A stretch of 64,000 nt of DNA, taken from the sequence record OR258281.1. One strand, written 5' to 3'. How positions within the stretch are numbered: position 1 is the stretch's first letter; the number at the start of each line of letters is the position of its first letter. Below the pieces are notes generated by a model that was not told where the DNA came from, did not search any database, and saw nothing but the letters and a program-made list of their open reading frames with translations. Position numbers and translations under genes: made by a program. This document shows positions 3,558 through 29,659 of the stretch, piece after piece.

Positions 3558-3832
3558 TTAGTACTTGAGGCGTTTTCTGATATGGTATTGTTTCAGTACT
3601 ATATCGGAAGACGCCTTTTATTGTTATTGCGAATGCTTCTCATTTACACTTATAGACACATATACACGCCCCTCGGGGACAGGTTTAATATAGCATTCTG
3701 AAGTACTTAACGCAAGGAAAAGAAATAGTATTTTAATTAGTATTAGTACTTAAAAAGTACTTAAAAAGTACTTGCAAAGTATTAGGTACTATAGTACTAT
3801 TATTACATCGAAACGAACGAGGGGATAGAGAA

Positions 3833-4105
3833 ATGTGGCAGATTATTAAAGTACAGGGTACAGTAGGTAAAGCGGTAAACATGGCGGTTCACAGTACTGA
3901 TAAATTACTTAATCATGTAATCCTTCAGAATCATCTTTCAAAGGATTTTGGTAATTTTGTAACTATCGAGTACTTAGAAACAGTTGAAGTACCAGATTTT
4001 AAACTTAACCACAAGGTTGAGCGTGTAATTGCTTTGGATGATATTAAAGCAAGATTTGTAGAAGATACTACTTCATTTGAAGATGATAATAGCGAAGGTA
4101 ATTAA
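3833..4105 (+). CDS. Hypothetical early protein
   Basis: Own promoter and RBS. Confidence 0.75.
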   Translation: MWQIIKVQGTVGKAVNMAVHSTDKLLNHVILQNHLSKDFGNFVTIEYLETVEVPDFKLNHKVERVIALDDIKARFVEDTTSFEDDNSEGN

Positions 4106-4187
4106 GTACTAAAAGTATATTAAAAGTACCTTGCAATATATCTTAGGGTACTTTATAATGTACTTATACCAACAAGGGGATAGAGAA

Positions 4188-4472
4188 ATGACAAATACTA
4201 CTGAAAACCGTAAATTCTACGTGTTGAAAATCAGCGAAAATATTGGTGAGTACGAAGCCAATTCTAAAATACTGGTACAAGTGAAGCCGGATGATCTGGA
4301 TCAATACGTTGAAGATCTTCTGAAAGATTCATGGCGTGGTGAAGCCGACTATAACGAAGAAGATCAAGTTTTTGAAAATGGCGAAGTTTCCTGGTACTTA
4401 ACTGAAGCGATTGAAGTAAAAGACGATGTAGCACAGTACTTAATCCAAATGAATATCTTAAATCTGTTGTAA
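4188..4472 (+). CDS. Hypothetical acidic early protein
   Basis: Cassette promoter and RBS; start corrected. Confidence 0.8.
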   Translation: MTNTTENRKFYVLKISENIGEYEANSKILVQVKPDDLDQYVEDLLKDSWRGEADYNEEDQVFENGEVSWYLTEAIEVKDDVAQYLIQMNILNLL

Positions 4473-4554
4473 GTACTAAGTACTATTAAAAGTATCTTGC
4501 TTAATTAAGTAGGGTACTTTATAATGGTACTTATACAAACAAGGGGATAGAGAA

Positions 4555-4746
4555 ATGACCATTCATTTAATTGCTGTTATTGATTCTAATGGTGCTGGTG
4601 CTCTGGTAACGTTTGAGTCTTCTTCAAGTGATTATGAGGAAGTACAGGAACAATTAGAAAACTGGTTATCAGATGAAGGATATGATAGTACTTATATCAT
4701 CATTGATGATATTCAAAGCTCTAAGCGGGTAGTCAACGGTTTATAA
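4555..4746 (+). CDS. Hypothetical acidic early protein
   Basis: Cassette promoter and RBS. Confidence 0.8.
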   Translation: MTIHLIAVIDSNGAGALVTFESSSSDYEEVQEQLENWLSDEGYDSTYIIIDDIQSSKRVVNGL

Positions 4747-4822
4747 AGTACTATTAAAAGTATCTTGCAATATAATGTAGGGTACTTTATAATGGTACTT
4801 ATACAAACAAGGGGATATAGAA

Positions 4823-4948
4823 ATGGTTGATATTGAAAAAGTACGTGAAGTTATGGAACTACTGCGTGATCAGGGTTTTGTTAATGCTGATGATGATGAA
4901 GAGTTAGATACAGTAACAGAACTTGCATTTAACGCTTTCAATGATTAA
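4823..4948 (+). CDS. 41-aa acidic early protein (not in the ORF track)
   Basis: MVDIEKVREVMELLRDQGFVNADDDEELDTVTELAFNAFND, lying between two cassette promoters with an RBS. Confidence 0.75.
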   Translation: MVDIEKVREVMELLRDQGFVNADDDEELDTVTELAFNAFND

Positions 4949-5032
4949 GTACTGAAGTACTATTAAAAGTATCTTGCAATATATTGTAGGGTACTTTATA
5001 ATGGTACTTAACGAATCAACGGGGATATAAAA

Positions 5033-5269
5033 ATGGGTTCATATCGTATTACTAACAAAGATATCAATGAGAAGATTGATATCTTAAACGAGATGTTTAA
5101 GAATCGCGGCGTTGAGATTGTATTCAAAAATTCACCGCGTAATGATTATGCAGCGGTTGATTACCGTAAAGGTGAAGACAATCTGAATTTCATTTCCGGC
5201 GTTAGTAATCGCGAATGTTACAATATGTTAGAATGTGCGATTTCCGCGATTCACTTGCTAAGTGATTAA
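5033..5269 (+). CDS. Hypothetical early protein
   Basis: Cassette promoter and RBS. Confidence 0.8.
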   Translation: MGSYRITNKDINEKIDILNEMFKNRGVEIVFKNSPRNDYAAVDYRKGEDNLNFISGVSNRECYNMLECAISAIHLLSD

Positions 5270-5361
5270 GTACTTCAGTACTGAAGTATTATTAAAAGTA
5301 CCTTGCAATATATTGTAGGGTACTTTATAATGATACTTACCTTAACAAAGGGGATAGATAA

Positions 5362-5661
5362 ATGCAAGTTAACCTTCATGCCACCAGCTTTCGACTGCGT
5401 GATGATACTGAATCACTAAAAGAAACTGTCGGGCTTGTAAAGTTCCTGGAAGACCATAAAGTACCATTTACCCGGTATACTACGCCTAAAACCTTACAGA
5501 GTGGTATTACCTTCCCTGAAGAAAAGCGGGTACAGTGGCACGAAAACGATCGGGCTGTAGAAATTCCATGCAGTACTATTGAAGAGTTACAAAAGTACTG
5601 TAAAGATTATGATTGTACTTTTATAGTACATGACGAATACATACAAGTTACTTTCCCGTAA
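5362..5661 (+). CDS. Hypothetical early protein
   Basis: Cassette promoter and RBS. Confidence 0.8.
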   Translation: MQVNLHATSFRLRDDTESLKETVGLVKFLEDHKVPFTRYTTPKTLQSGITFPEEKRVQWHENDRAVEIPCSTIEELQKYCKDYDCTFIVHDEYIQVTFP

Positions 5662-5729
5662 TTATTAAAAGTACCTTGCAATTATTATCAGGGTACTTTA
5701 TAATACTTACATATTGAAAGGGGGATAAT

Positions 5730-6101
5730 ATGTATCAGAACATTGAAGTACTTAACACTAAAGAACGCCGGGAAGAAATTGAAAAGTTAGGCAAGATGGC
5801 ACTTGAGACTAATCTTAAGCACAGTACCATTACCCGCTTTTACAAACCTGGTGATGTACGTCATTATGACTTTGATAAGCTGACGCCGGATCTGATTGGC
5901 AAAGTAGTACGCATTGAGTACTACAGTACTGGCAACAATCCCGAAACTGGTATCTGGTCAGGTTGTTATCGTGAGATAATTGGTACTGTAACATACCTGA
6001 CGCCGGGTGTAATTACTAATGTTGGTTATCTGGTACTGGATGGCAATAAGTGTATAAGTGCACATTCAGGCCACGACTTTACACTTGAGGTACTACAATG
6101 A
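5730..6101 (+). CDS. Hypothetical early protein
   Basis: Cassette promoter and RBS. Confidence 0.8.
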   Translation: MYQNIEVLNTKERREEIEKLGKMALETNLKHSTITRFYKPGDVRHYDFDKLTPDLIGKVVRIEYYSTGNNPETGIWSGCYREIIGTVTYLTPGVITNVGYLVLDGNKCISAHSGHDFTLEVLQ

Positions 6102-6328
6102 TCCTGACTCAACACAAAGTAGCAGTAGCCTTGCATAGTATCAGTACTGTTATGCTTAAGTACAGTATTTGTGCTATGGCTGCGGCCTGCGATGGATATA
6201 CGGATAAGCGTATTGAAATCATGATGCAAAATGGTATCAGTGCAGAAGACGCTATTATCCTTGAACGGTTAGAACCGGGTGAGCTGGTGGAATTTGACCT
6301 GGGTAGTGATGCCATAACTTATAATTAG
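6098..6328 (+). CDS. Hypothetical protein
   Basis: ATGA overlap; terminator follows. Confidence 0.7.
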   Translation: MILTQHKVAVALHSISTVMLKYSICAMAAACDGYTDKRIEIMMQNGISAEDAIILERLEPGELVEFDLGSDAITYN

Positions 6329-6337
6329 TACTAAAAT

Positions 6338-6365
6338 AAGCCTTGACTAGTTCAGGGCTTTTTGT
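6338..6365 (+). terminator. Intrinsic terminator overlapping a sigma70 promoter (TTGACT 6343 - 17 bp - TATCTT 6366)
   Basis: AAGCCTTGA-CTAGT-TCAGGGCTT followed by a T-run. Confidence 0.7.
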
Positions 6366-6568
6366 TATCTTAATACCGTCCCCGAGGGGCCGGGAAATGT
6401 AAGTACTTAATGAAATGATAATCATTCGCATTAGCAATCGATTCTAAGCGTGTATCTATATAGAGGGAATGCAACGGGTCGGGTTTAGTACTAAAACGCT
6501 TTATAATGCTTCTGGTGCATTATAAATAGGATTAGTGATTTAGTACTAAACCAAAGGAAGTTTTTATA

Positions 6569-6811
6569 ATGATTAAGCATACAGACATTAACGCAATTCA
6601 GAAATGGCAGGCAGTACCATTTAGCCAGCTAGGTCAACTACTACAGTCAGAAGGTTTTCGATTTGCAAAGGCATTCAGTACTGATGAGATCAGGATCTTC
6701 AAGTCTGACGATAACAAGTACACGATAGTTTTTAACGGTCAGTTGGCTAAGGTGTATCAAGCAGGAAATATGAGACAGTACATTCATATGTTCAGTGTAG
6801 TAAAAGGATAA
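6569..6811 (+). CDS. Hypothetical protein
   Basis: ORF with AAGGA RBS; terminator at about 6813-6836. Confidence 0.75.
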   Translation: MIKHTDINAIQKWQAVPFSQLGQLLQSEGFRFAKAFSTDEIRIFKSDDNKYTIVFNGQLAKVYQAGNMRQYIHMFSVVKG

Positions 6812-7203
6812 GGAAGCCATTGGCTTCCTTTTTTTGTTTGTATTTTATGGGTTTAGTACAAGTACTAATATTTCTCTAAAAAGATGCAAAAAGTACTTGC
6901 ACTAATTTTTCCAGTACTGTAGTATTAACTCCATCGAAGGGCGAGACGGAAACGAATCAAACTAAGATGAAGTTCAAAGGGTTCTGAAAGATGCCTTCTT
7001 ACAAAGACTGCAACTGATTCTCCTTTAGACTTCCTGATGATTGAATACTAAAAATTCAGTCCTTCAGAAAAAGATTTAAAAAGATTTAAAAAGTACTTGC
7101 AGAGTTAGTCGAAACGATGTAAAGTACTATTCAAGCAGTAAGAAACACCAAAAAACAAAAAAACCTTTATACACAAAATACACTGAAAATTGAGGATTAA
7201 AAT

Positions 7204-7950
7204 ATGACAACTTCTACTAAAGCAAACAACAAACCTTCTTCTAAAGCTGGCAACACTAACAAAACGCCTGATAACAACCTGGCGAAAAACACCAACGCGA
7301 AAACCGCTGGTGCGAACAAAGAAGGTACTGAAACCAGCACTGATACCGCTGAAGCTACTCCAGCCGCTGAAGAAGGTTCAAACGCTGAAGGTACTGATAC
7401 CCCGGCGACTGAAGAACAGAAAGCCCAGGCTAAACGTGTAACTCTGATGAGTGCACTGGAAAGCGGCGATGCTCTGGCGGTGGCTGAAGTACTGATTAAA
7501 CAGGGCCGCACTCAGGAGCAGATCGCTTCCTTCGCTGAAACTTTCGGTCAGGCTACTAAATCCTTCGCTGAAGTAGTTGCTAAACAGGAAGCAGAAGCAA
7601 AACAGCGTGCTGCTGAGAAAGAGAAAGCGGATCGTGAACTGGAAGAAGAACGCCAGAAAGCACAGGAAATCGTTGAAGCTGGTAAAAAGGCCGCGATTGA
7701 AGAAATGATTAAAAAGCTGGAAAGTACTGGTATCAAACCAGAAATGGCGGTACAGATTGCAAACAGTACTTTCGGTGGCGGTGCACGTTCAGGCGGTGCA
7801 GCACCAAAAGCAACAGTCCGTGTTAAGTACAAAGATGATCTGTACACTGTTAAAGTAACTGGTAACGACAAAGAAGCAATTAAGAAAATGATTGCTGAAT
7901 CAGGTCTGAGCCGTGCTGACTTCATCAAACAGTACCAGATTTCTGAATAA
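7204..7950 (+). CDS. H-NS-like protein with a low-complexity N-terminal extension
   Basis: Coiled coil, then EEMIKKLESTGIKPE and C-terminal VTGNDKEAIKKMIAESGLSRADFI, resembling H-NS EMLIADGIDPNE and [25 protein letters not shown]. Confidence 0.5.
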   Translation: MTTSTKANNKPSSKAGNTNKTPDNNLAKNTNAKTAGANKEGTETSTDTAEATPAAEEGSNAEGTDTPATEEQKAQAKRVTLMSALESGDALAVAEVLIKQGRTQEQIASFAETFGQATKSFAEVVAKQEAEAKQRAAEKEKADRELEEERQKAQEIVEAGKKAAIEEMIKKLESTGIKPEMAVQIANSTFGGGARSGGAAPKATVRVKYKDDLYTVKVTGNDKEAIKKMIAESGLSRADFIKQYQISE

Positions 7951-8046
7951 GATGTAACGGGGCGGTATACGCCCCATTCTAAGAGGCTTTTGCAAAGTAC
8001 TAGTACAGTTGGATAGTGTTTTATAAAAGTCTCTTAAAATGAACTA

Positions 8047-8075
8047 CAGGACACTCAATTGAGTGTCTTTTTTTT
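8047..8075 (+). terminator. Intrinsic terminator
   Basis: GGACACTC-AATT-GAGTGTCT followed by a T-run. Confidence 0.8.
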
Positions 8076-8169
8076 GTTTGTATCTTTTGATTAAGTACTA
8101 AAATAAATTTGCACTATATCTAGGAATGTATTATAATTACCTTAAGTTAATCAATGGGGGATTACGAAC

Positions 8170-8361
8170 ATGTTCTATCGGGTAGAAGAATACAACAACG
8201 ATGGTTATCTTGACTTGCTGGTTATCACTGAGAAGTCAAAAGCTGAAGTACAGGCAAAGTACCCGGAGGCAAAAGTTAAACTTGTTTCCGACGCGGATAG
8301 CATTGAAACCTGGGACATTGCTGATATGGAAAGCATTACTAAGATTGAGGTACTTAAATGA
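8170..8361 (+). CDS. Hypothetical early protein
   Basis: Promoter and GGGGAT RBS. Confidence 0.75.
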   Translation: MFYRVEEYNNDGYLDLLVITEKSKAEVQAKYPEAKVKLVSDADSIETWDIADMESITKIEVLK

Positions 8362-8753
8362 ATACTGTATTTCAAAGTTTAATGCGTGATGTACTGGCGA
8401 CTTTCGCTGACGTTGTAGTACTGATGCCGCCAAAATCAAGCCTGGATGCGGAGATCGCAATGATCCGCAAACGGATGAAAGAAAGCAAGTTACAGAAGCG
8501 GGAAGCCTTTGCAATTGATGAACTTATCAAAGCACACTATAAATTTACAGGTACATTACATTTAGTACTTGCATATAAGTTTAATGGTGAGCTATACTAT
8601 TCAGGAAATAAGCCGGTTCCATTTATGAAAAGTACTAAGGTACTTCATGATATGAATATGCTTACTCAAACTGACTGGAATAACCTGGAGCGTTATGTAG
8701 TATGGATCAAGTCCGGGCAGATTTACGATAAGGTACATTCAATTAATCACTGA
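8358..8753 (+). CDS. Hypothetical protein
   Basis: ATGA overlap. Confidence 0.75.
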   Translation: MNTVFQSLMRDVLATFADVVVLMPPKSSLDAEIAMIRKRMKESKLQKREAFAIDELIKAHYKFTGTLHLVLAYKFNGELYYSGNKPVPFMKSTKVLHDMNMLTQTDWNNLERYVVWIKSGQIYDKVHSINH

Positions 8754-8829
8754 GTACTATTAAAAGCGTCTTGCTTTATATTGTAGGATGCTTTATAATG
8801 TACTTAATGAATCGACGGGGATAGAGAAA

Positions 8830-9147
8830 ATGTTAGGTACTCCACACAACAAAGCATACAAATACAACTACTTTTTCATTGATAGCTTAGGCGTTCAGTG
8901 CCGGGTTGAAAAGGTTATCTGTTTAGTACCAGGTGCACCAAATATTCATAAGATGATCATTCAGTGGAACCATGCCGCTAAAAAAGGCAACTACTACGAA
9001 TTGATCGGGGAAATACCAGTTAAGGAAGCACTTTTACTGAAAAGTACATCTGGAAGTACTATCCGCGATAACTGGAAATTCCTGGGTAATTTACTGTTTC
9101 ACAGTATCGAACTTTCTTTTAATAAAGTACTACCTAAACTTGCATAA
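8830..9147 (+). CDS. Hypothetical early protein
   Basis: Variant cassette promoter; start corrected. Confidence 0.75.
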   Translation: MLGTPHNKAYKYNYFFIDSLGVQCRVEKVICLVPGAPNIHKMIIQWNHAAKKGNYYELIGEIPVKEALLLKSTSGSTIRDNWKFLGNLLFHSIELSFNKVLPKLA

Positions 9148-9158
9148 GGTAATATATA

Positions 9159-9380
9159 ATGTTAAACTTATCTTGTGGTGCAAGAGTTAAATTTTCCGGT
9201 ACTTTACCTGGCGGATATGAAATTGAAGGTACTGGAGTTGTAAAGACACAAATCGATGATCATTGTAGTGTTTACATCGGTACTATTAAAGTAAATGGCG
9301 AGGATGTTACTAAAAAGTACAGTGCGGAAATTTCCTACCTTATACCCATAGGAATAATTAAGTCAAGTACCCCGGCATAG
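9159..9380 (+). CDS. Hypothetical protein
   Basis: ORF; terminator follows. Confidence 0.7.
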   Translation: MLNLSCGARVKFSGTLPGGYEIEGTGVVKTQIDDHCSVYIGTIKVNGEDVTKKYSAEISYLIPIGIIKSSTPA

Positions 9381-9576
9381 GCTGGGGATTTTTTTTGAGT
9401 ACTTTTAAATTCTCAGGACAGATCTACCCGCCCCTCGGGGTCAGTATTAGAATAGCAAACCAGGTACTTAAAAGCAAGGAAAAGAAATAGTTTATTTCGG
9501 TACTTAATACTATATAGTACTTGCAATGTAATTAGTATTGTAGTACTATTATTGTATTGAAACGAAGGGGGATTGT

Positions 9577-9798
9577 ATGCCGAAGTCATTTAACGCGAGA
9601 AGTAAAGAAAGTACTGGATTACTCTTTATTGATTCAGAAGTATATAACAAAGAGTTTCCTGCTGGTACTACATTAGCAGAGATCAAATCTGCGATGGATA
9701 TTAAAGGGGAAGTATTCATTAAATCCCGGTATGCTAATTCCGTAGAGTACAAATTGAAAGGAAGTACTTACACTTTCACTGTAAAGTTTTTATTCTGA
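9577..9798 (+). CDS. Hypothetical early protein
   Basis: Promoter and RBS. Confidence 0.75.
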   Translation: MPKSFNARSKESTGLLFIDSEVYNKEFPAGTTLAEIKSAMDIKGEVFIKSRYANSVEYKLKGSTYTFTVKFLF

Positions 9799-9874
9799 AT
9801 ACATTAAAAGTACCTTGCAAATAGTATCAGGGTACTTTATAATGTACTTACAGTAAACAAAGGGGATAGAGAAA

Positions 9875-10060
9875 ATGGCTAAATGTACTATTTGTGGTAA
9901 AGAGATTGCACTGAATCCAAGTGCTAAAGAACGTGCGGAAAAGTTCGGTGGAAAGCCGTCTGATTACACTAAGCTGTTTACTACTCACGCGGCATGTTCA
10001 TTACAGAAGCGTTCAGAAGAAAGTACTGAACTTATGCGTAAGCTGGCTGGTGGACAATGA
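9875..10060 (+). CDS. Small protein with CxxC and HxxC motifs (possible Zn binding)
   Basis: MAKCTICGK...THAAC; cassette promoter. Confidence 0.75.
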   Translation: MAKCTICGKEIALNPSAKERAEKFGGKPSDYTKLFTTHAACSLQKRSEESTELMRKLAGGQ

Positions 10061-10242
10061 AACTTTCAAAGCTGAAAGCACTGGTACAGAAACTTGAAGA
10101 TGATAGTACCGGTACTGATCCAGAAGTTTTCTTGTACTCAATTCATGCTCAAGATATACAGTTTGACATCTTAGAAAATGCTGAAAGATTGAGTGCACGA
10201 CAAATGTGTTTTGATGGTAGTTATCACTTACCTATTGAATAA
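10057..10242 (+). CDS. Hypothetical protein, paralog of 10605-10805
   Basis: MKLSKLKALVQKLEDDSTGTD vs MKLSKLKEIVRQLEEESKGTD. Confidence 0.8.
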   Translation: MKLSKLKALVQKLEDDSTGTDPEVFLYSIHAQDIQFDILENAERLSARQMCFDGSYHLPIE

Positions 10243-10313
10243 GTTTATTAAAAGTACTTGCAATATATCAGCGAGTACTTTATAATGTACTTATTGAAAC
10301 GGGGGAATAGATT

Positions 10314-10505
10314 ATGAAACGTTATATCAATGCAAAATCAGGATCAGTAACTGAAACAATCGAAGAACTGGATAGTAAAGATTTCGCAAGTATGAATGAT
10401 TTTAAAAATACCTTAGCTACTCGGGTCGGTTCGCATCGAATGACATTAAAATCATTTAAAGTATATGTTTCTTCTCGTTGTGATAAATCATGGACGGGCA
10501 ACTAA
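10314..10505 (+). CDS. Hypothetical early protein
   Basis: Cassette promoter and RBS. Confidence 0.75.
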   Translation: MKRYINAKSGSVTETIEELDSKDFASMNDFKNTLATRVGSHRMTLKSFKVYVSSRCDKSWTGN

Positions 10506-10604
10506 TCACAAAACGGCGATATTACTGTTTAAGTACAATAAAAGTACTTGTATTAATTAAACGAGTACTTTATAATGTACTTATACCAACAAGGGGATAG
10601 AGAA

Positions 10605-10805
10605 ATGAAACTGTCAAAACTGAAAGAAATTGTACGTCAACTGGAAGAAGAAAGTAAAGGTACTGACGTAGATATTGTACTTTACGATATTGGTATTCCA
10701 GGCCGTGCTCCAAACTATGAGCTTGCATTTCAAAACAACGAATATCCATTAAGTGTTATGCGTGTTGAAAACACGTTTGCACTGCCGCTGGTACTGGTAA
10801 AATAA
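10605..10805 (+). CDS. Hypothetical early protein, paralog of 10057-10242
   Basis: Cassette promoter; start corrected. Confidence 0.8.
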   Translation: MKLSKLKEIVRQLEEESKGTDVDIVLYDIGIPGRAPNYELAFQNNEYPLSVMRVENTFALPLVLVK

Positions 10806-10881
10806 TACATTAAAAGTACTTGCACTATATCAGCGAGTACTTTATAATGTACTTATACAAACAAATACAGGGAATTAAACT

Positions 10882-11094
10882 ATGGTCAGATTAAAGAAAG
10901 GTTCTTTAGTTGGAACCCTGAAAATAACACCACGCGAACATTATACAATGAATGGTTGTGATTGGCGTGATTGTTTAGCTCTTGTGGATGATTCAGGTAA
11001 TTGGCTTAATAGTACCTGGTTTCGTCCAAACGCACACAAAAAGGCATTGAGTTATTTTCTTGAAAATGGCTGGTCTGTAGAAAACGGGGATTAG
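10882..11094 (+). CDS. Hypothetical early protein
   Basis: Cassette promoter. Confidence 0.75.
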   Translation: MVRLKKGSLVGTLKITPREHYTMNGCDWRDCLALVDDSGNWLNSTWFRPNAHKKALSYFLENGWSVENGD

Positions 11095-11098
11095 TCAA

Positions 11099-11353
11099 AT
11101 GAAAGTAATTAAAATCAGTACTTACACGTATGTACCGGACGCGATCTTAAAGGCACTGTCACACATCCAAGAAGGCTGCCCGGACGTGCACCAAGTACAG
11201 TACGACGAAGACGGAAACTGGTTGTACATTAACCGGGATGGTACTGCAACGGATTTCGGGAAAAGTACTGTCAGTATCAATCAGGAAGTACTTGAGCAGG
11301 CGTCTGACGCGGCTTATTCAGTTGGCTATCCTGTAACGTTTGTACTTCCTTAA
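11099..11353 (+). CDS. Hypothetical protein
   Basis: GGGGAT RBS at the end of the upstream gene. Confidence 0.75.
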   Translation: MKVIKISTYTYVPDAILKALSHIQEGCPDVHQVQYDEDGNWLYINRDGTATDFGKSTVSINQEVLEQASDAAYSVGYPVTFVLP

Positions 11354-11428
11354 AGTACTATTAAAAGTATCTTGCAATATATTGTAGGGTACTTTATAAT
11401 GTACTTATACTAACAAGGGGATAGAGAA

Positions 11429-11686
11429 ATGAAAGTATCAGAACTGATTGCAGAATTACTGAAACAGGATCAAAATAAGGATGTAGTAGCGGATGTATGG
11501 TACGCGGATGATATTCGCGAAGCGGCTGAACATCTGGAAAAGCTGACGGATGAGCAATGTCAGAAAATCATTCAGTACTTAGAGCGTAATCCTAACTCTG
11601 AGTATGGCATCAACAACGAGCGTATTATTGATATTGTTGATAACCTGATTGAATCAGGTGAAATTGATTTCGACTACACCATTTAA
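11429..11686 (+). CDS. Hypothetical acidic early protein
   Basis: Cassette promoter and RBS. Confidence 0.8.
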   Translation: MKVSELIAELLKQDQNKDVVADVWYADDIREAAEHLEKLTDEQCQKIIQYLERNPNSEYGINNERIIDIVDNLIESGEIDFDYTI

Positions 11687-11758
11687 TTACATTAAAAGTA
11701 CCTTGCAATATATCTCAGGGTACTTTATAATGTACTTAAATCAACGGGGGATAGTACA

Positions 11759-12205: not shown

Positions 12206-12300
12206 CGTGGCACTAAAAACGTGCTAAAGTTAATTATACTAAAGTACTATACAAAAGAACGTGTAGTACTTGATAATTAATTTACTCTGGAAGTATAAAG

Positions 12301-12696: not shown

Positions 12697-12745
12697 AAAG
12701 CAGGGATAGGCGGGATGTTCACCTATCCCTGAAATAACACAGCAA
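12695..12745 (-). ncRNA. Candidate sRNA of about 50 nt
   Basis: Minus-strand TTGACT-17-TAAGGT promoter (12778-12750) and terminator CAGGGATAGG...CCTATCCCTG-CTTTTT. Confidence 0.35.
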
Positions 12746-12901: not shown

Positions 12902-13105
12902 GTAGTACTTGATAAATTTTACACATAACTACCCACCCCTCGGGGTCACTGTTACTATAGCACATAGTGCTAATTACGCAAGGAATTATGTTCAAAAAGT
13001 AGAACTAAAAACAAAGAAATATATTATTAAAATAGTACTTAATTCCCCTTGCAGTACTTAATAGTTTTTGATAATATAACTGTATTGAAGCAAGGGGATA
13101 TGAAA

Positions 13106-13333: not shown

Positions 13334-13336
13334 AAA

Positions 13337-14705: not shown

Positions 14706-14779
14706 GTTATTATTTTTATCGACCCCGAGGGGCGGATAGTTATATCTAAATTTTAGTACTATTACGGTACTGAAAAATC

Positions 14780-19008: not shown

Positions 19009-19013
19009 TCTAT

Positions 19014-20867: not shown

Positions 20868-20939
20868 TACATTAAAAGTATCTTGCATAAGTTATCAGGG
20901 TACTTTATAATGAATTATCAAATCAAGAGGGATAAGCAA

Positions 20940-21422: not shown

Positions 21423-21655
21423 AAATTGTACCAGTGCCAGAAGTACAGAAGCCTAATAATTATCTAGATAAGGAATTAGATTTCTACCGGGATTTACCGA
21501 AAAGAAAAAAGGTTCCTTGCAAATCCACCAGCACTGTAGTACATTTACACGAGCACAAGATCATAGTAGGTTATGAAAATCTTGGGCCAAATAAAGTACC
21601 TAAAATGACTCCTGAACGCGTCCAGGCTCATATTGAATGGTTGAAAAGTTTATAG
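21419..21655 (+). CDS. Hypothetical protein
   Basis: ATGA overlap. Confidence 0.7.
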   Translation: MKIVPVPEVQKPNNYLDKELDFYRDLPKRKKVPCKSTSTVVHLHEHKIIVGYENLGPNKVPKMTPERVQAHIEWLKSL

Positions 21656-21661
21656 GATCAT

Positions 21662-21883
21662 ATGATGAAGTACAAAATCTATTACCGTATTAAACGCAAA
21701 AAATCACTTGCTAATAGCATTAAGATGGAGTTTAATCTTGAAGCTGAAGATTATCTTAAAGCGGTTGATAAACTTACCCGGTCTATTACAGACTACGAGC
21801 CGGATGTAGAAGTAATTATAATACAAGCATTCTGTGAAGTATATAACAACAACGAAACTGTAGTACTTCCAGAAGATTTATAA
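21662..21883 (+). CDS. Hypothetical protein
   Basis: AGGA RBS. Confidence 0.7.
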   Translation: MMKYKIYYRIKRKKSLANSIKMEFNLEAEDYLKAVDKLTRSITDYEPDVEVIIIQAFCEVYNNNETVVLPEDL

Positions 21884-22093
21884 GAATAAGCACAATCGGC
21901 CTACTATCCCCCTTGCACAATCAGGCCGGTTGTGCTACCTTATTACTTGTCCTCTAGGGGCGGGGAGATATAGTACTAAATGTAAATGATTCTCATTCGT
22001 AATAAAATAATTAAGAATAGTACTAAAAAAGACTTGCACTATAGTTAAGGAAATATTATAGTACTTAACAGGAACAGAGAGGGGGATAACGAG

Positions 22094-22390
22094 ATGCAAG
22101 CAAGTACCTTTATCAAAACTGTACGCACTAATCTGGAAACTGTAATTACTGAATCACAACGCCAGGAATATAAGGCAGAAGTGATCATTAAGCAATTCAA
22201 AGAACGTATGAAGAATGTTCGTGAGTTAGTACTGAAACAAATTACTAACCGCAAAGAACAACAAAAGTATCTTAAGGTACTTAATGATTGTAATGTACAA
22301 TATAAAGATAAGCATTATGATCTTATTGTGATGGACTTCAAAGAATTAAAAACTAAGCTACCTTACATGATCGATTTCATTAAATTGTAA
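22094..22390 (+). CDS. Hypothetical basic early protein
   Basis: Promoter and RBS. Confidence 0.75.
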   Translation: MQASTFIKTVRTNLETVITESQRQEYKAEVIIKQFKERMKNVRELVLKQITNRKEQQKYLKVLNDCNVQYKDKHYDLIVMDFKELKTKLPYMIDFIKL

Positions 22391-22465
22391 GAGTACAATA
22401 AAAGTACTTGTACTATATCAGCAAGTACTTTATAATGTATTCATCAATCAAGAGGGGATAGAAAA

Positions 22466-22699
22466 ATGCATAACAAGTTTAAAGTACGCAAGTGGTCTGA
22501 CGATAAGTTGCAAGCCCGTCCGTATGATGTTGTTTATCTCGATCTGGCTAACAACAACTTGCACTTTCATCCAGATATGCAGTACAGCAATGAAGTAGAT
22601 GCCGCTGTTGCTACTGAAAAGCTGAACCACGCCAGGCAAGCCGCTAACCCTAAACAGTGGCCCATCGATGGCCCTATCCCTGAAGAATATTTGCACTAA
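22466..22699 (+). CDS. Hypothetical early protein
   Basis: Cassette promoter and RBS. Confidence 0.8.
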   Translation: MHNKFKVRKWSDDKLQARPYDVVYLDLANNNLHFHPDMQYSNEVDAAVATEKLNHARQAANPKQWPIDGPIPEEYLH

Positions 22700-22789
22700 A
22701 AAACAAAAGTAGTACTGAAAAAAGACTTGCATATAACATCTAATAGTACTATAATAAGTACATACAAAAAGATATAGGGGAATAAAATC

Positions 22790-23692
22790 ATGGTTATGTC
22801 GTATTCAAACAAAACAGAAAAGCTGATTCCAAGTATCGGTCGTGAACTTCGGGCTAAGTCTCGCCCCCTTACCAATACTGAAATGTTTCAGGCTGCACCG
22901 TCACTGTTTCAGGCACAGGCACACGATTCGCGTTCAAGCCGTTTCAAGCCTATCAGTACTATTGACGTAGTTGATGCGTTACGCACAGAAGGCTTTGAAC
23001 CCTTCTCGGTACTGCAATCCCGTGCTCGCGATGAAAGTAAAATCGACTTCACTAAACATCAGGTACGTTTCCGTAAACGTGAAGAACTGGAAGGCGAACT
23101 GTTGTTGCCTGAATGGAATGAAATCATTCTGGTTAATGCCAACGATGGTACAAGTTCTTACCAGGTAATGGCTGGTGGATTCCGCCAGGCTTGTGCAAAT
23201 GGTTTAGTACTCGGAGACATTAACTGTACTCAACGTGTACACCATAAAGGTTCTAACATCCAAAAAGATGTTATCGAAGGCGTGTACACAGTAGTAAATC
23301 AATTCAAAATGATTGATGAATACAAAGAAGATATGCAACGTACTATGTTGTCAATTGAAGACCGTAATGGTCTGGCAATGGCTGCAATGATCTTCGCCGG
23401 GTTTGATTATCAGGATCTTCCTTATGATCATAAGTTACTGCTGAAAACCCATCGCCATGCTGATAGCGGTCACGATCTCTGGAGTACTTTTAACGTAGTA
23501 CAAGAGAACCTTGTAAAAGGCGGCGTGAAGTATAAGAAGTTTGACGAAGAAAAACAAACAGTACGTAATGTGAGTACTAAAGGTATTACCAGCATCCAAA
23601 AGAATATCCAGGTTAATCAGGGCGTCTGGACTGCTGCTAAAATGCTGATCAATAGTAATCAGGAAAAACAGGACGTACTTGCTTTAGTCTAA
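22790..23692 (+). CDS. DUF932 family protein
   Basis: HDSRSSRFKPISTIDVVDALRTEGF, FTKHQVRFR, EIILVNANDGTSSYQVMAGGFRQACANGLV, DLWSTFNVVQENL. Confidence 0.85.
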   Translation: MVMSYSNKTEKLIPSIGRELRAKSRPLTNTEMFQAAPSLFQAQAHDSRSSRFKPISTIDVVDALRTEGFEPFSVLQSRARDESKIDFTKHQVRFRKREELEGELLLPEWNEIILVNANDGTSSYQVMAGGFRQACANGLVLGDINCTQRVHHKGSNIQKDVIEGVYTVVNQFKMIDEYKEDMQRTMLSIEDRNGLAMAAMIFAGFDYQDLPYDHKLLLKTHRHADSGHDLWSTFNVVQENLVKGGVKYKKFDEEKQTVRNVSTKGITSIQKNIQVNQGVWTAAKMLINSNQEKQDVLALV

Positions 23693-24253
23693 TCCCCCGT
23701 AAAACGCTCTACAAGGAACGTAGAGCCGTTTTACAAAGTACTTGATAAAAGATATTAGGTACTCTGTAAAACGTAATAGAAAGGCAACCAGAAATGAATA
23801 ATATAATCTTTACTGGTGGATTTGCTTTAATCTATATGCTAGTATATGGCTATCAGGAATATGGTTCAGTACTGAATGGCTTAAAACATTTTGCAAAGTT
23901 CATAGTGGGGATGTTATAATGTTTAAACTAATCAGCCTCGTTTGTATTCTGGTAGTAGTATGCCTTATCTGGCAGACTGCCGCAATCTATGTCAGTGCTA
24001 CCCTGGGTTATATGTCTGACTTCATTGCTAACATCAGTGCATTCAGCTTTATCAAAATTCAATAGTACTGTACCGGATTCTATATAATTTCGAGTACTCA
24101 ACAAAGTAAACACGAATCATAGAAATTTTGGTACACCCTTGAGCACTCAGGGAAAATTTCGCAAGTACGTGAGCACATATGCGGATCATGCCTGTACCCA
24201 TACATTACACGTACAGATACACATCATACAAATATATACGCGAGGGTACTTGC

Positions 24254-24619
24254 ATGTACTTACCTAATAATGTATCATTAATATCAGTTGATGGTTCAGT
24301 GAGAATCAGTAAATGTACAGATGAAGTTAATCCGTACCTGGTTTATCATTTAGGTACTTGCACAGTGCATAAAAGTACCTTAGAGGAAGCTATCGATCAT
24401 TGTACTAAACGTTATCAAGCTCGCTTCCCAAAAGAAACAAAAGTACTTGCAAAAGATATTAAACGTGGTATGATCGTTTGTACAGAAGGTTATCCATACG
24501 GTTCAGTTAAGTTCAATAACCGTAATGTTGATGAAGACCAGGATCATCGCCAGTTAGTACTCTTCTCGCAAGATACTATTACGTTAGATTCCAGTGCTGT
24601 ACTGACAGTACTGAAATAA
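24254..24619 (+). CDS. Hypothetical protein
   Basis: GAGGG RBS; start corrected. Confidence 0.65.
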   Translation: MYLPNNVSLISVDGSVRISKCTDEVNPYLVYHLGTCTVHKSTLEEAIDHCTKRYQARFPKETKVLAKDIKRGMIVCTEGYPYGSVKFNNRNVDEDQDHRQLVLFSQDTITLDSSAVLTVLK

Positions 24620-25077
24620 TACCAAATATGGCCGGTACTTGACAAAACTCTATCCCCCTAGAGTCAAGTACTGGCCGCCTCTTTTTATCCCCAAAATACA
24701 TTTTTACCCTAACCCCTAATTGTATCACATCCTGAGCCAAAAAACAAGTCCGACCAGCACGAATTGCTTAGATGCGAATACGAATGATAATGATTCTCAT
24801 TTCAGTCAAAGGCCACATCTACCCGCCCCTCGGGGTCAGTATTAATATAACAGAACTGAAAAATAATTGCAAGTACTACAGCACTATTTGTTTAAATGCG
24901 AATGAGAATCATTTACAACAATGATCGCATCTCCCCACCCCTCGGGGTCAACTACATAGTACTAAACCAGTACTGAAAAAGCAAGGGAATATATCAAAAT
25001 AAAGGTACTTATTTGTACTTGCAGAATCATTTCAGGAAAGGTATAGTACTTACATCGAAATTACGGGGATAGACAAA

Positions 25078-25485
25078 ATGAATAAAGAACAGGCTATTGC
25101 AGTACTGCGAGTACTGAAGAACATCCGCACTTGTGTAGATAATCAAGATACTTATATCCCTGGCGTGGGCGATTGCCATAATCAGGATGCAAGATATCGC
25201 AGTCCGTTTAACCTGTCTAAATCTTTCGGGATTTGCTGGCATGTATACGCCCACACATCCGGCGATCTCGGGATCGATATTGAGTTTCTTAAACCGGTAT
25301 TTGTTGAATTAGGTTATAAGTCTGATGCCTACCCGGTGGAAAGTACTGTACTGCCTGAAGGCGACAATGATTATTGGTTTGAAAATCGTAGTAATTACGA
25401 TCTGTACTTCAGCGATAACAAGTACTCAAAAGTACGGTATGAGTTATTAGAAAAGCTGATTAAGTACTTTGAAAATAAATTGTAA
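25078..25485 (+). CDS. Hypothetical early protein
   Basis: Promoter and RBS. Confidence 0.8.
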   Translation: MNKEQAIAVLRVLKNIRTCVDNQDTYIPGVGDCHNQDARYRSPFNLSKSFGICWHVYAHTSGDLGIDIEFLKPVFVELGYKSDAYPVESTVLPEGDNDYWFENRSNYDLYFSDNKYSKVRYELLEKLIKYFENKL

Positions 25486-25584
25486 TTGGTAATAATCAGT
25501 ACTTGCAAAGTACAGTACTATCAATTACTATTAGTACTCAAAGCGGGGAAATGACTTCCCCGCCGTAATAGGGGATTAAAGATT

Positions 25585-25893
25585 ATGGCACGTAAAACCA
25601 CTAAGATTTGTTCACTGATGTTATCAGAGCACGATTCACAACGTAATGCGATCCTTCTCAATAAAAGCACCACAGATAAAGAGAAAGTACTGCAATTGCG
25701 TGAAATTAATGCAATGATAGAATCGTTGCTGATGAAATCAAACTGCTATCATGGTTTCCAGTACCCGGATTTAGAGGGTTTGCGTAAAGTTCAGGCAGAA
25801 TATGAATCCACGCCAGGCAGCGACTACGGTACTGTAGTACTTGATTCTGTAGCTGAAAATAACCGTATGTATATCGGTCTCCGCGACTGGTAA
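25585..25893 (+). CDS. Hypothetical early protein
   Basis: Promoter, 5-prime hairpin leader and RBS. Confidence 0.8.
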   Translation: MARKTTKICSLMLSEHDSQRNAILLNKSTTDKEKVLQLREINAMIESLLMKSNCYHGFQYPDLEGLRKVQAEYESTPGSDYGTVVLDSVAENNRMYIGLRDW

Positions 25894-25989
25894 AAGTTTT
25901 TATTAAAAGTACCTTGCATATATCGTAGGGTACTTTATAATGAAATCTAAATCAGAGAATGATTCTTTGATGTACCAGGGGGAAAGATT

Positions 25990-26199
25990 ATGGCACTGTA
26001 TACCCGTTCTTTATTCAGTACTAAAAACATCGCGACACAAGTCGAAAGATATTACATGATGGTTTGTGATGCTCCACGCCGAATCAGTAAGGCGGAATAC
26101 CTGGAGTACAAACAAACGGCGATCCGTAAAGATTCAATGAGTACCGAAATTACTAAAAAATGCATCCGTCATTTTACTACCTGTTACTATGACGTATAA
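25990..26199 (+). CDS. Hypothetical early protein
   Basis: Cassette promoter. Confidence 0.75.
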   Translation: MALYTRSLFSTKNIATQVERYYMMVCDAPRRISKAEYLEYKQTAIRKDSMSTEITKKCIRHFTTCYYDV

Positions 26200-26428
26200 A
26201 ATATTTTCGAAATAATGTAATTGCCGCTTGTATTCCAGGCGGCAGTTTGATACATTGAAGTTGACCCCGAGGGGTGGGGAGATCCAATCATATACATAGC
26301 AGGCTAATAGTTCAGTACTGAACTAACAAAAATAGTACTAAAATAAATTTGCAATATATCCATTCATCCTGTACATTAGTACTTAACAGGTAAGCAATGA
26401 CGCTTAACCTAATATGGGGATTAAAATT

Positions 26429-26899
26429 ATGAATGCTATTCAGTTCGCTGCAAAGGTTAAAGAATCATTCCTGAAGTACTTCCCTAATGGTTTCTTAGGA
26501 TCTAGTAAGTACCAGTTAGGCGGCGGGATTCACTTCACGGCTGGCCTGGTTTCGAATGCTAACGATATTTCTTCCGGGTACAGGGTAAATGATATCATTT
26601 CCCTTTCTTTCGGTATTCACGACAATGTTAAGTACAACACAGAAGAAGAGATCCAGGGTAAGATCGTGATTGAATTTGTACAAAACAGCTTCAGTACTAA
26701 ACCCGAGCCAGGTTCTTACATGGCGATGGGCCGGGTAAAGATCCCCGCACGTAAGATCAACAACACACCAGAAAAAGCAATTGAAAGCCTGGATAAAGTA
26801 TTCCAGAAAACAGCAGAATTGATAAAAGCTGAAGTACTTAAGAATAACTTATACCGCCAGGAAAACATAAACGAAAAGTACTTAAACAGTATCAAATAA
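26429..26899 (+). CDS. Hypothetical early protein
   Basis: RBS; start corrected. Confidence 0.8.
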   Translation: MNAIQFAAKVKESFLKYFPNGFLGSSKYQLGGGIHFTAGLVSNANDISSGYRVNDIISLSFGIHDNVKYNTEEEIQGKIVIEFVQNSFSTKPEPGSYMAMGRVKIPARKINNTPEKAIESLDKVFQKTAELIKAEVLKNNLYRQENINEKYLNSIK

Positions 26900-26979
26900 A
26901 TTTGCTTATAGTACCGAGTACTGATATATTACTACTCAAAGGGGGAAATGATTTCCCCCTAATAATGGGGATTAAAATT

Positions 26980-27402
26980 ATGAGTACTTTTACTTTAGCA
27001 ACATATACTTACAACAACACCACTAATGAAGTACTTCACCATACTAACAGTGAACGTACTAAACTTTGGTACGCTAACCACGGCATCTCTAAGCACCTGG
27101 ATTCATTGCAGGAAATGGAGATCCCCGCGTCAAACCTGCTCATGATCGCCCTGGGCTGGGCTGGTGGCACTATCCATATGGTAGCCAGTGAAACAGGTCT
27201 GACTGTCCAGGAGATTTTGGATCTGGAACAGGTGAAGCCGGTACAATCCCGCGAGGAAATTACCCCGTATGGCTTCGGTATGATGTACGGTACTAAGAAC
27301 ATGGATCAGTATAAAGGAAATGTACAGTACTGGCGTGGAGTATTAGAAAATACTATCCAGTACAAAAAAAGTAAAATTAATTATAAATTGTACTTGAACT
27401 AA
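26980..27402 (+). CDS. Hypothetical protein, paralog of 30021-30371
   Basis: LMIALGWAGGTIHMVASETGLTVQEILDL...YKGNVQYWRGVL. Confidence 0.8.
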   Translation: MSTFTLATYTYNNTTNEVLHHTNSERTKLWYANHGISKHLDSLQEMEIPASNLLMIALGWAGGTIHMVASETGLTVQEILDLEQVKPVQSREEITPYGFGMMYGTKNMDQYKGNVQYWRGVLENTIQYKKSKINYKLYLN

Positions 27403-27470
27403 GGAACTGTATTTGATACCTTAGTACTCAAAGGGGGAAATGATTTCCCCCTGTAATTGGGGATAGTAAA

Positions 27471-27938
27471 ATGAACAAATTCAAAGCGGTTTCAGAAGTA
27501 CTCAAGAACGGCAGGAAATCAGTAGATGGTACTGAATGGAATTACATGTTCCAGGGTACTCGCTTCGCTTGCATCTCTAAACAGGATGGAAAGTATTTTG
27601 TACACTATGAAGGCCGCACTACAGCATTGCAATCTTATCCTAATTTTATGAAAGCGATTGCTTTTGTCGCGGATCTGTATTGCCGTCTGTATAACTCCGC
27701 TGTGTGTGCTGGTGGTACTGAAGTAACTTTCTATCGTGACATCACTGTTTATGTCGGTACTGATGGAAAGCCTTACACTAAGCTGGCCGGGAAGTTCTCA
27801 TTAGTCCAGGTATTCGGGAACTGCTATCAGCACCTCTCAAAGTACTATAGCGATGTAATGTCTGATATTGAAATCGGTTACTTTGCGGATGTAATGGAAC
27901 AGGCTATTAGTGATTATTTGAACCGCGACGACGAATAG
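27471..27938 (+). CDS. Hypothetical early protein
   Basis: Promoter, hairpin leader and RBS. Confidence 0.8.
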   Translation: MNKFKAVSEVLKNGRKSVDGTEWNYMFQGTRFACISKQDGKYFVHYEGRTTALQSYPNFMKAIAFVADLYCRLYNSAVCAGGTEVTFYRDITVYVGTDGKPYTKLAGKFSLVQVFGNCYQHLSKYYSDVMSDIEIGYFADVMEQAISDYLNRDDE

Positions 27939-28016
27939 TACTGGTATTGCTCCACCAATAATGTATAATAAGTACTTCGGGGAATCAAATGGTTCCCCAT
28001 TACTGAGGGTAGCGGG

Positions 28017-28493
28017 ATGAATACTGACAACAATTTGCAGGTACTGGCTGAAGCAATGCAATCCATCGTAAACGCAAACGGTGTTGATGCATGTATCGCG
28101 TACTGTGAAAGTGTTTATTCTAGTACCTTCAGAACTGATTCTGTTGTTACACTTAACGATTTTGATTGTGATTGTGATTGTGACCCGGCTGAAGTACTCC
28201 GTACCTTAACCGATTCAGCCGCCGAATATCTTGCAGTCTTAAACGGTGTAGTACTCAATGAACCTTTAGGGTTCACTCCATCAATCGATGATGAAGATTT
28301 CGAGTACTATCCAGACCCTGGCGAGATGAACGCCGAACTGATACAGCCATATAAAGAGCAGGCACGGGCTTTAGTACTCAATAACTTGGAGTTCGTTATC
28401 CTGGTTAACTACAAAGGGGAAGAAGCCGGATATATGGTAAAAGAAGCCGCTCAGAGTTTAAGTCTGTACAAGGGAAAGTACAACTACGTTTAA
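28017..28493 (+). CDS. Hypothetical acidic protein with a DCDCDCD repeat
   Basis: 158-aa ORF. Confidence 0.7.
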   Translation: MNTDNNLQVLAEAMQSIVNANGVDACIAYCESVYSSTFRTDSVVTLNDFDCDCDCDPAEVLRTLTDSAAEYLAVLNGVVLNEPLGFTPSIDDEDFEYYPDPGEMNAELIQPYKEQARALVLNNLEFVILVNYKGEEAGYMVKEAAQSLSLYKGKYNYV

Positions 28494-28646
28494 CATCCCC
28501 CGAAATATTCCCACATACGGATCGTGTGGGATATTTCACCCTTTCTTGTACTAATAGCACTTTATGTTCTTGCAATATATCCCACGATAAACGATAATAA
28601 GTACTCAAGGCAAGCATGATGCAAAGCCAACCAGGGGATAAAGAAC

Positions 28647-28871
28647 ATGAAATTAGTAATCCGTGATCATAAGTTCGGTGACATTCTTTCAGTAGTTTTT
28701 GATATTACTATCGCACCAACTGCTAATAGTACCGTAACAACTGAAGATGGGTCATATGAAATTTTTGAAGTAGCATATGATTACAAAAACGGGCATGTAA
28801 ATGCATACACAGAAGAATATGATCATGAGCCGGTCGAGTACTACACCAAGACCGCCGAATTGATTAAATAG
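28647..28871 (+). CDS. Hypothetical early protein
   Basis: Promoter, hairpin leader and RBS. Confidence 0.8.
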   Translation: MKLVIRDHKFGDILSVVFDITIAPTANSTVTTEDGSYEIFEVAYDYKNGHVNAYTEEYDHEPVEYYTKTAELIK

Positions 28872-29659
28872 TCTCTTTACAAATCTTTACAAACCAGCCC
28901 TTGCACCCGCAGGGGCTTTTTGTTATCTTAATACTGACCCCGAGGGGCGGGGAGATGTAGCTGTATATAATAATGATTCTCATTCGCATTAAGTACTAAC
29001 ACGTCGCAATCATTCAGTACCCAATCATTTTATACAAAATCATTAGCATACTATTAATCACATATAATAGTAATCACCGTGAGTTACTATTTGCTTACTA
29101 AGCTAATGATTAAAGTACAAAACTATCAGATCCCAAATCATTAACAATGTAATAATCACTATAGTTATTATCTATAATCAAATCATTTAGTACTAAACAG
29201 TTAGGATGCTAACTATTACATGAAGTACTACAAGATAAGATATAATTAGCACGCTAAGTAATTCGCTGCCTGGACGCATTTCGCCGGGAATTACAAGATG
29301 CAGAAACTATATCAGTAGTCAATAGCTAATAGTACTTTATTTCAATTTTGCTTAATTCTGACATTATATACAGTACTCTAAAACGCTCTGTAACGCATTC
29401 TAAGCGTTTTTACCCAAAAGCTAACCAAGTGTACTGGTACTACACAGATCTCTTCACCACGAGCGAAATAGTATATGTCAATACTAAACTATAAAAATAA
29501 ATGAAAAATAATAGTACTTCAGGCTTGACTTATATAGTACTGAAGTACAATTAAGTACTGAAAAATAATTATAGAAATCGCTTGCCAGTACTGTACCAAA
29601 AGCGTATATTAGTAATCGAAGGGCGAGCATGATGCGATGCCTAATAGGGGATAAAGAAC

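Follow-up and report, generated by a model that had tools for sequence, protein, structure and literature searches.

The left end of the genome of Xanthomonas phage XaC1 poses the question of whether a lytic phage carries operators for Fur, the iron-dependent repressor of its bacterial host. The stretch analysed here, 64 kb long and hereafter called the window, is identical (100%) to the first 64 kb of the XaC1 sequence (OR258281.1, 348,967 bp) and contains six short AT-rich dyads, designated Fur-type boxes 1 to 6. XaC1 is a lytic jumbo myovirus of X. vesicatoria with 35% G+C, distant kin of GAP32, CBB, BF and similar phages, whose direct terminal repeat of 32,031 bp is of the T5 'long ends' type and holds 70 small open reading frames (ORFs) without known function (PMC11273794). 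The host considered here, Xanthomonas vesicatoria, is the one given in the sequence record. All six boxes fall within the terminal repeat and, since this is found at both genome ends, each XaC1 genome has 12 copies. The boxes suggest, rather than show, that a lytic phage reads or disturbs the iron status of its host. On balance, the evidence leans towards Fur-type DNA operators that are most likely bound by host Fur-Fe2+, as two dimers on a dyad of 21-25 bp, and that would place early promoters under an iron gate, with titration of Fur as a side effect.

The classical E. coli Fur box is GATAATGATAATCATTATC, and its 21-bp form is described as (7-1-7)x2. For X. campestris, a 19-bp Fur box, AATGAgAATcATTctCATT, was derived from the upstream regions of iron- and Fur-regulated genes, with ten instances given (Table 1 of Blanvillain et al., PMC1790865). 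A weight matrix built from these ten boxes alone, independent of the phage sites, was run over both strands of the window and of the 348,967-bp genome, where its six top matches are exactly the six phage boxes (17.1-24.2 bits). The training sites themselves score 15.8-24.0 bits, and the mean best score in 100 simulated windows is 14.3. Phage boxes agree with the X. campestris consensus at 15-18 of its 19 positions, compared to 13-17 for the natural X. campestris boxes, and at least 16 of 19 is reached at six places in the genome versus 0.3 in simulations. The AATGA-N3-TCATT core pattern occurs 5 times in the 32-kb terminal repeat, where 0.06 are expected, and nowhere else in the 349-kb genome; the 18-mer consensus with at most 3 mismatches finds 4 matches versus 0.09 expected. 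At the level of sequence the boxes are thus quantitatively identical with Fur boxes. This upholds one half of the preliminary description of this DNA, which had recognized a Fur core in these sites; its enterobacterial framing did not hold, the boxes matching the plain E. coli 19-mer consensus at 13-15 of 19 positions and the recorded host being X. vesicatoria. Enrichment over random sequence, proposed there as a check, is likewise clear with the X. campestris motif and weak with the E. coli consensus, for which 8 places in the genome reach 15 of 19 versus about 4 expected and which would have failed that check. The seventh-best match of the X. campestris matrix (39046, 15.5 bits) lies inside an ORF and was judged to be due to chance.

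The six sites are all present where they had been reported. Box 1 (TGTAAATGAGAAGCATTCGCA; 3626-3648, minus strand; matrix score 17.7; 16/19 consensus positions) has its core, previously placed at 3632, at 3633-3645 and shows one arm change (GCATT). Box 2 (AATGATAATCATTCGCATT; 6410-6432, plus strand; 23.5; 17/19) has its core at 6414-6426 and box 3 (AATGTAAATGATTCTCATTCGTA; 21979-22003, plus strand; 21.9; 17/19) at 21985-21997. Box 4 (AATGAGAATCATTATCATT, with further repeats CGTATTCGCAT; 24777-24805, minus strand; 24.2; 18/19) and box 5 (TGTAAATGATTCTCATTCGCATT; 24895-24919, minus strand; 17.1; 15/19) have cores at 24789-24801 and 24901-24913, respectively, while box 6 (TATAATAATGATTCTCATTCGCATT; 28966-28990, plus strand; 19.8; 16/19) has its core at 28972-28984.

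Each box is found at a fixed place behind a GC-rich motif, CCCCGAGGGG, of which the terminal repeat, and only the terminal repeat, has ten exact copies and one variant. The distance from the first base of this GC motif to the start of the box is exactly 34 nt in the six cases, that is 24 nt after the 10-nt core and not the looser 15-25 bp reported before. The polarity of the box relative to the motif is the same in 6/6, as had been noticed, and a CGCAT(T) extension is promoter-distal in 5/6; in box 4 (24789) it is preceded by an extra ATCATT repeat. A TTGNNN-17 bp-TANNNT pair ends 8 nt before the motif in all 11 units and is also kept in 40 related units described below. It is this fixed spacing and conservation, not a generic promoter scan, that argue for promoters at these positions. 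The GC motif, formerly taken for the promoter, is expected to be where the transcript begins and to form a hairpin there, and with the promoter pair placed 8 nt upstream of it the boxes would cover approximately +29 to +54 instead of +40 to +55. The order of the module is a sigma70-like promoter, 8 nt, the GC hairpin motif, CGGGGAGAT, a spacer of fixed length and free sequence, and the box.

Comparison of the copies with each other shows what has been retained. Pairwise identity is 0.97 in the box arms and 0.84 over the 13-nt core, while it is at background in the 14 nt before the box (0.38), the 13 nt after it (0.31) and the promoter spacer (0.28). The conserved islands are the promoter hexamers, the GC motif and the box only; a passenger of a duplicated repeat should instead be conserved as a whole block. 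Because box and distance are kept while flanks and spacers have drifted to background, both are under selection and the box is no passenger of a recent duplication.

The cassette is not confined to XaC1. A scan of metagenome contigs for GC motif, 34 nt and box returned 28 stretches, and all GC motifs in the returned loci amount to 55 distinct units, of which 40, from 25 loci, are complete boxed units. In these 40 the box is always in the +28 or +34 register, and T30, G31, C49 and A50, positions that the search pattern did not force, are at least 90% conserved. Their conserved skeleton, TG-N2-AATGA-N3-TCATT-N2-CA, agrees at every position with that of the 21-bp Fur site TGATAATGATAATCATTATCA, and it is these positions that the six XaC1 boxes and the 40 related copies conserve. 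Two related units match the X. campestris consensus at 19/19. The same cassettes are carried by a XaC1-like contig of 349,404 bp (JGI Ga0308166_1000037; L107, L116, L119, L120, L125). In the relatives L096 and L097 (~80-90% identical) box 4 changes only between T and G and between C and A at degenerate positions of the motif. Unit 5 of L096 has a largely rewritten spacer without insertions or deletions, so that the spacing is retained, and in a contig from a public run the same unit has a wholly different spacer with the 34-nt distance unchanged. Many shorter metagenome contigs also carry XaC1 cassettes, and four public runs hold contigs ~90% identical to window positions 23700-29690. Among the sequencing runs searched, none was an RNA run containing XaC1. 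The exact GC motif had no matches in IMG/VR, the relatives coming only from the metagenome collection.

More distant phages have the cassette in their terminal repeats as well, namely CBB, GAP32, fHe-Yen9-04, fENko-Kae01 and two 121Q-like coliphages. There it consists of a near-consensus promoter, a hairpin HP1 with a GNGAAA-type loop, a second hairpin HP2 (RCCC-loop-GGGT) that is the counterpart of the XaC1 GC motif, and then GCGGAGAT and GTCTA. What follows GTCTA is TAAAATTYA in most units and a Fur-type box in a minority. HP2 followed at 34 or 35 nt by a box is found in Serratia phage BF, Yersinia phage fHe-Yen9-04, Klebsiella phage fENko-Kae01 and two 360-kb metagenomic phages, where this module forms the centre of convergent pairs. 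Individual sites are shared over these distances: the 19-mer of box 2 is identical in fENko-Kae01, and the 22-mer AATGATTCTCATTCGCATTTAA of unit 5 is identical in XaC1, BF and contig L025. Phage fENko-Kae01 carries in addition, outside any hairpin unit and just left of its first convergent pair, a dense 110-bp array of Fur-like hexamers (L004:690-800; matrix scores 18.9 and 17.9), in which the 15-mer GATTCTCATTCGCAT of the XaC1 boxes recurs without change.

Neither XaC1 nor its relatives gave a homologue in a tblastn search with E. coli Fur, so that any Fur acting on the boxes would be that of the host. Several findings weigh against this assignment. Fur operators normally overlap the -35/-10 region and a downstream position is unusual, whereas the boxes lie over neither the -35/-10 region nor the start site but at ~+29 to +54. 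The start itself, at the motif or one base before it, is placed from hexamer spacing alone with the usual sigma70 geometry, and a generic scan for sigma70 promoters and terminators recovered one of the six boxed-unit promoters (unit 4), with no enrichment over shuffles. The X. campestris motif is computational, defined upstream of genes shown to be Fur-regulated and not footprinted, and the mediocre agreement with the E. coli consensus was given above. The inner N2 positions are conserved asymmetrically, as TA proximally and mostly as CG or TG distally, which Fur does not explain. Finally, in CBB, GAP32 and the 121Q-like coliphages, relatives infecting E. coli, Cronobacter and Pectobacterium, the hairpin units are present and the box is absent, a patchy presence among phages whose hosts all have Fur. 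In a rival reading the box is an operator for a phage-encoded dimeric DNA-binding protein or for another host protein, such as an early repressor of this class of promoters, with a likeness to Fur sites that is coincidental or convergent. In favour of this reading, phages of several host genera have the box at the same fixed place in a cassette that is specific to phages, its presence is patchy, its N2 positions are asymmetric, and most genes of the terminal repeat have no known function. AATCATT heptamers, each equal to half a box, form arrays with 15-bp spacing at 29008/29023/29038 and 806/821 (positions 29008-29190 and 800-880), and the 12-mer AATCATTnGCAT is found only in the terminal repeat (806, 6420, 19613 and 29038); another DNA-binding protein may recognize these repeats, or they may serve as weak half-sites for Fur, and together they suggest a binder of the iteron type. 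We nevertheless hold such a different binder to be rather unlikely. The 14 conserved positions all coincide with the Fur skeleton and an independent matrix from host Fur boxes ranks the boxes first in 349 kb, which chance would hardly produce; the letters that alternate at degenerate positions, T/G and C/A, are those of real Fur boxes, and no candidate protein was identified for the rival role.

The boxes might also act at the RNA level in short transcripts led by the GC hairpin, either by folding into an AU-rich AAUGA-NNN-UCAUU hairpin, which in some copies could extend to 8-9 bp, or as a single-stranded seed or Hfq site. The box would indeed be transcribed if the predicted start is correct, unit 4 resembles a terminator-ended small RNA of ~110 nt that is highly conserved in relatives, one inner symmetric position of this unit changes from G-C to U-A among three sequences, and the neighbouring HP1 and HP2 vary in loop and stem as RNA stems do. 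Yet the hairpin, already offered as an alternative in the preliminary description, is poorly supported. It appears in the minimum-energy fold of 3/6 leaders, in folds that differ, with z-scores from -1.7 to +0.9; the arm substitutions, seen in copies that the search pattern did not force, are uncompensated in 3/3 cases (GCATT at 3633, AATGC in L108, AATAA in L111); and positions 32/48 and 33/47 are conserved although mostly unable to pair. The box arms are invariant whereas HP1 stems change freely, a terminator-like hairpin with a T tract is found within +125 in 1/40 units, and the downstream contexts are diverse, comprising second promoters, convergent terminators and tandem units. Rfam gave no match at gathering score in the 64 kb, and with permissive limits, up to E = 5, the terminal repeat yielded nothing beyond noise. 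Any palindrome in DNA could in principle fold as a hairpin once transcribed, and the pattern of invariance fits sequence-specific recognition better, which leaves a role as RNA improbable. That the boxes have no function, having been carried along by an intergenic repeat duplicated recently or being AT-rich palindromes that arose by chance, could be argued from the AT-rich genome, in which crude consensus counting yields many matches of 13-14/19. The background identity of flanks and spacers (0.28-0.38) next to a retained box and spacing, the persistence of the pattern in 40 diverged copies and across distant phages, and the large enrichment (5 versus 0.06, and 6 versus 0.3) speak strongly against it; the comparative data bring this last explanation already close to refutation and we give it hardly any credence.

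If host Fur is the binder, its position suggests how it could act. Assuming that the open complex covers DNA to about +20 and that, during elongation, the front of the polymerase is 15-20 bp beyond the active site, the enzyme would run into a protein bound at +29 to +54, and stop, when the RNA is 10-15 nt long, which corresponds to promoter escape, with the very GC-rich start of the RNA in the hybrid. In relatives with HP1 the stop would come some 20 nt later. In an iron-replete cell Fur-Fe2+ would be bound and the gate closed, leaving the promoters blocked or poised; in an iron-starved cell Fur without metal would leave the gate open, allowing transcription into downstream small genes, non-coding RNAs or the antisense direction. 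Three of the promoters so gated point to small genes or to a 670-nt non-coding stretch and the other three are opposed to the direction in which most transcription runs. With 12 sites in each genome and more as the DNA replicates, Fur could also be titrated late in infection and iron uptake by the host de-repressed. Since a sponge would work at any spacing, titration is regarded as a side effect; the spacing observed speaks more for a gate that acts in cis and depends on position than for a pure sponge.

Some XaC1 products could give iron sensing a plausible purpose. The phage encodes a class I ribonucleotide reductase, NrdA/NrdB, with an alpha and a di-iron beta subunit (XaC1 257066-261347), and one small protein, encoded at L012:42317-42646, has a weak match to 2OG-Fe(II) oxygenases. 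The protein annotated as 'starvation-inducible regulator' is DUF5856, and Pfam searches with ten ORFs adjoining the boxes gave nothing except DUF932. A broader proposal, which we put forward tentatively and with more doubt than confidence, is that a clade of virulent jumbo phages has wired host Fur into the early cassettes of its terminal repeats, combining iron-gated early transcription, including small non-coding or antisense RNAs, with a Fur sponge that would serve the iron enzymes of the phage.

Several known systems share part of this organization. The XaC1 boxes have in common with gammaproteobacterial Fur boxes an AT-rich dyad, TGA/TCA triplets at a 6-bp period and the same letters at degenerate positions, and their matrix scores and consensus matches equal or exceed those of genuine host Fur boxes. 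They differ from usual Fur boxes by being downstream of the start, in a lytic phage and in a fixed cassette behind a 5' hairpin, and they are known here from sequence. Phage genes under the control of host iron repressors include stx1 of Shiga-toxin prophages (Fur) and tox of corynephage beta (DtxR). As in these, a metal-sensing repressor of the host would read an operator on phage DNA; however, stx1 and tox are cargo toxins of temperate phages with a single operator over the promoter, while XaC1 has six sites, 12 per genome, in the first-entering early repeat of a virulent jumbo phage. Transcription roadblocks are exemplified by lac O2, PurR at purB, and CodY or CcpA. They likewise place a protein site inside the transcribed region, in XaC1 a candidate stop for RNA polymerase, but tens to hundreds of nt into genes; in XaC1 the site is strictly fixed to the 5' GC hairpin, with a predicted stop at 10-15 nt. 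Multicopy Fur boxes titrate Fur, the principle of the Fur titration assay (FURTA), and many predicted high-affinity sites on replicating DNA could similarly draw Fur from host promoters, although a sponge would need no fixed position relative to a promoter and the number of sites in XaC1, 12 per genome, is modest. Lastly, promoter-proximal RNA hairpins are found in phages, as in lambda nut boxB and HK022 put, and 5' stabiliser hairpins of the ompA type are known. The XaC1-type cassette resembles these in that its transcript would open with a short hairpin or two (HP1 with GNGAAA-like loops in relatives, and HP2, the GC motif), but it has no boxA and no known partner protein.

To our knowledge, host iron repressors act on a few cargo toxins of temperate phages and not on the early programme of lytic ones. 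A full-text literature search returned no paper in which Fur boxes are connected with the genomes of lytic phages, and in the genome papers of XaC1 (PMC11273794), CBB and fENko-Kae01 there is no mention of the cassette or of Fur. Fur boxes as such are well known; a fixed downstream module of early-promoter cassettes in virulent jumbo phages would be new. If Fur binds, XaC1-like phages would sense or manipulate iron, key in the ecology of plant pathogens, from the first DNA to enter the cell, which would bear on the performance of phage biocontrol on iron-poor leaf surfaces. The six sites, their 40 variants and five box-less cassettes as internal control provide a natural test system. Independently of Fur, the comparison brings out a conserved cassette, common to Rak2/GAP32-like jumbo phages, in which a promoter is followed by a 5' hairpin and an operator slot.

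The six boxed units have varied surroundings. Unit 1 (3669-3716, minus strand) has TTGCGT-17-TATATT, 8 nt and the GC motif CCCCGAGGGG (3669-3678), its box lying between this motif and the terminator of a convergent plus-strand ORF (3363-3557). Unit 2 (6342-6399, plus strand), with TTGACT-17-TATCTT, 8 nt and CCCCGAGGGGCCGGGAAAT (GC motif 6380-6389), has its -35 hexamer in the preceding terminator hairpin, and ORF 6569-6811 starts ~140 nt downstream of box 2. The variant GC motif, CCTCTAGGGG (21951-21960), belongs to unit 3 (21913-21970, plus strand; TTGCAC-17-TACCTT), and its C-to-T change retains a G-U pair; box 3 is followed by a second ordinary promoter (TTGCAC-17-TATAGT) and then by ORF 22094-22390. 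Units 4 (24826-24872; TTGCAA-17-TATATT, 8 nt, CCCCGAGGGG at 24826-24835) and 5 (24938-24985; TTGCTT-17-TACTAT, 8 nt, CCCCGAGGGG at 24938-24947) are arranged in tandem on the minus strand. Box 4 lies within a transcription unit of ~110 nt that ends in a terminator (~24720-24836, minus strand), formed by a terminator-like hairpin, GCAAUUCG-UGCUGGU-CGGACUUG, with six U residues; its 3' half is almost invariant in L096 and L097, and unit 4 is likely a small-RNA gene of ~110 nt containing box 4. Unit 6 (28900-28957, plus strand) begins in a terminator hairpin (28896-28917) that holds TTGCAC, followed by TATCTT, 8 nt and CCCCGAGGGGCGGGGAGAT (GC motif 28938-28947), and a 670-nt ORF-free stretch extends downstream of box 6.

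Of the 11 GC-motif units, six have a Fur-type box, four have TAAAATTYA and one has neither. The five box-less motifs are at 9431-9440 (minus strand, with AATTTAAAA downstream), 12936-12945 (minus), 14723-14732 (plus), 26265-26274 (plus) and 30706-30715 (plus). TAAAATTYA boxes are located at 9403-9411 and 12913-12921 on the minus strand and at 14747-14755 and 30730-30738 on the plus strand, 24 nt after the GC motif in 3/4 units and 29 nt after it in the 9440 unit. This sequence is also found in many units of related phages, and the cassette seems to carry an exchangeable operator slot downstream of the GC hairpin. The terminator hairpin of an upstream gene can hold, in its stem or loop, the -35 hexamer of the next cassette, yielding fused terminator-promoter modules at 28896-28917, 30664-30685 and 6345-6370; the same fusion occurs in relatives (GGGGTTGACTTCGGTTAGCCCC).

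Hairpin units are often arranged as facing convergent pairs. In the window, positions 1040-1240 have a canonical pair, with units at ~1100 (plus strand) and 1173 (minus strand), HP1 CCAGCGAAATGG and HP2 GCCCTATAGGGT / ACCCTCGTGGGC. The pair is near the left genome end, as in relatives, and its centre is AATTTT with no Fur-type box; its GC elements are mutually complementary, so that either transcript could form a long hairpin. The HP2 loop is variable in sequence and in length (2-4 nt), which together with the G-U variant of XaC1 argues for a hairpin over a protein-binding palindrome. For HP1, support consists of its recurring position and variable arms; a shuffle test on single sequences of relatives was not significant, a mean of 0.41 of the shuffles reaching the observed stem. 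CRISPR-repeat mimicry, REP/BIME-like elements, N4-type hairpin promoters and R-loop origins were considered for the GC-hairpin units and dropped, as there was no positive evidence for any of them.

Two further features of the terminal repeat deserve mention. The palindrome AGTACT occurs 241 times in its 32 kb versus 13 expected, and elsewhere in the 349-kb genome its density is 20-45 per 10 kb; a 15-20-fold excess is also found in CBB, GAP32, fHe-Yen9-04, fENko-Kae01 and the 121Q-like phages. Copies are often seen next to ordinary promoters (aAGTACTgaaaAGTACTTGCA ... TATAGTACTta). Downstream of box 6, at 29340-29500 (plus strand), a promoter-like TTGCTT-17-TATACA precedes a non-coding element of ~100 nt. 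Its consensus fold comprises a closing stem and the hairpin ACGC-AUUCUAA-GCGU; the 7 sequences compared show no compensatory pairs, and there was no Rfam match. T5-like Demerecviridae have a counterpart, 70-84% identical to the element, in the part of their terminal repeat that lies upstream of the pre-early gene A2 and is free of ORFs, and a similar element start is found in fENko-Kae01 (L004, ~2480).

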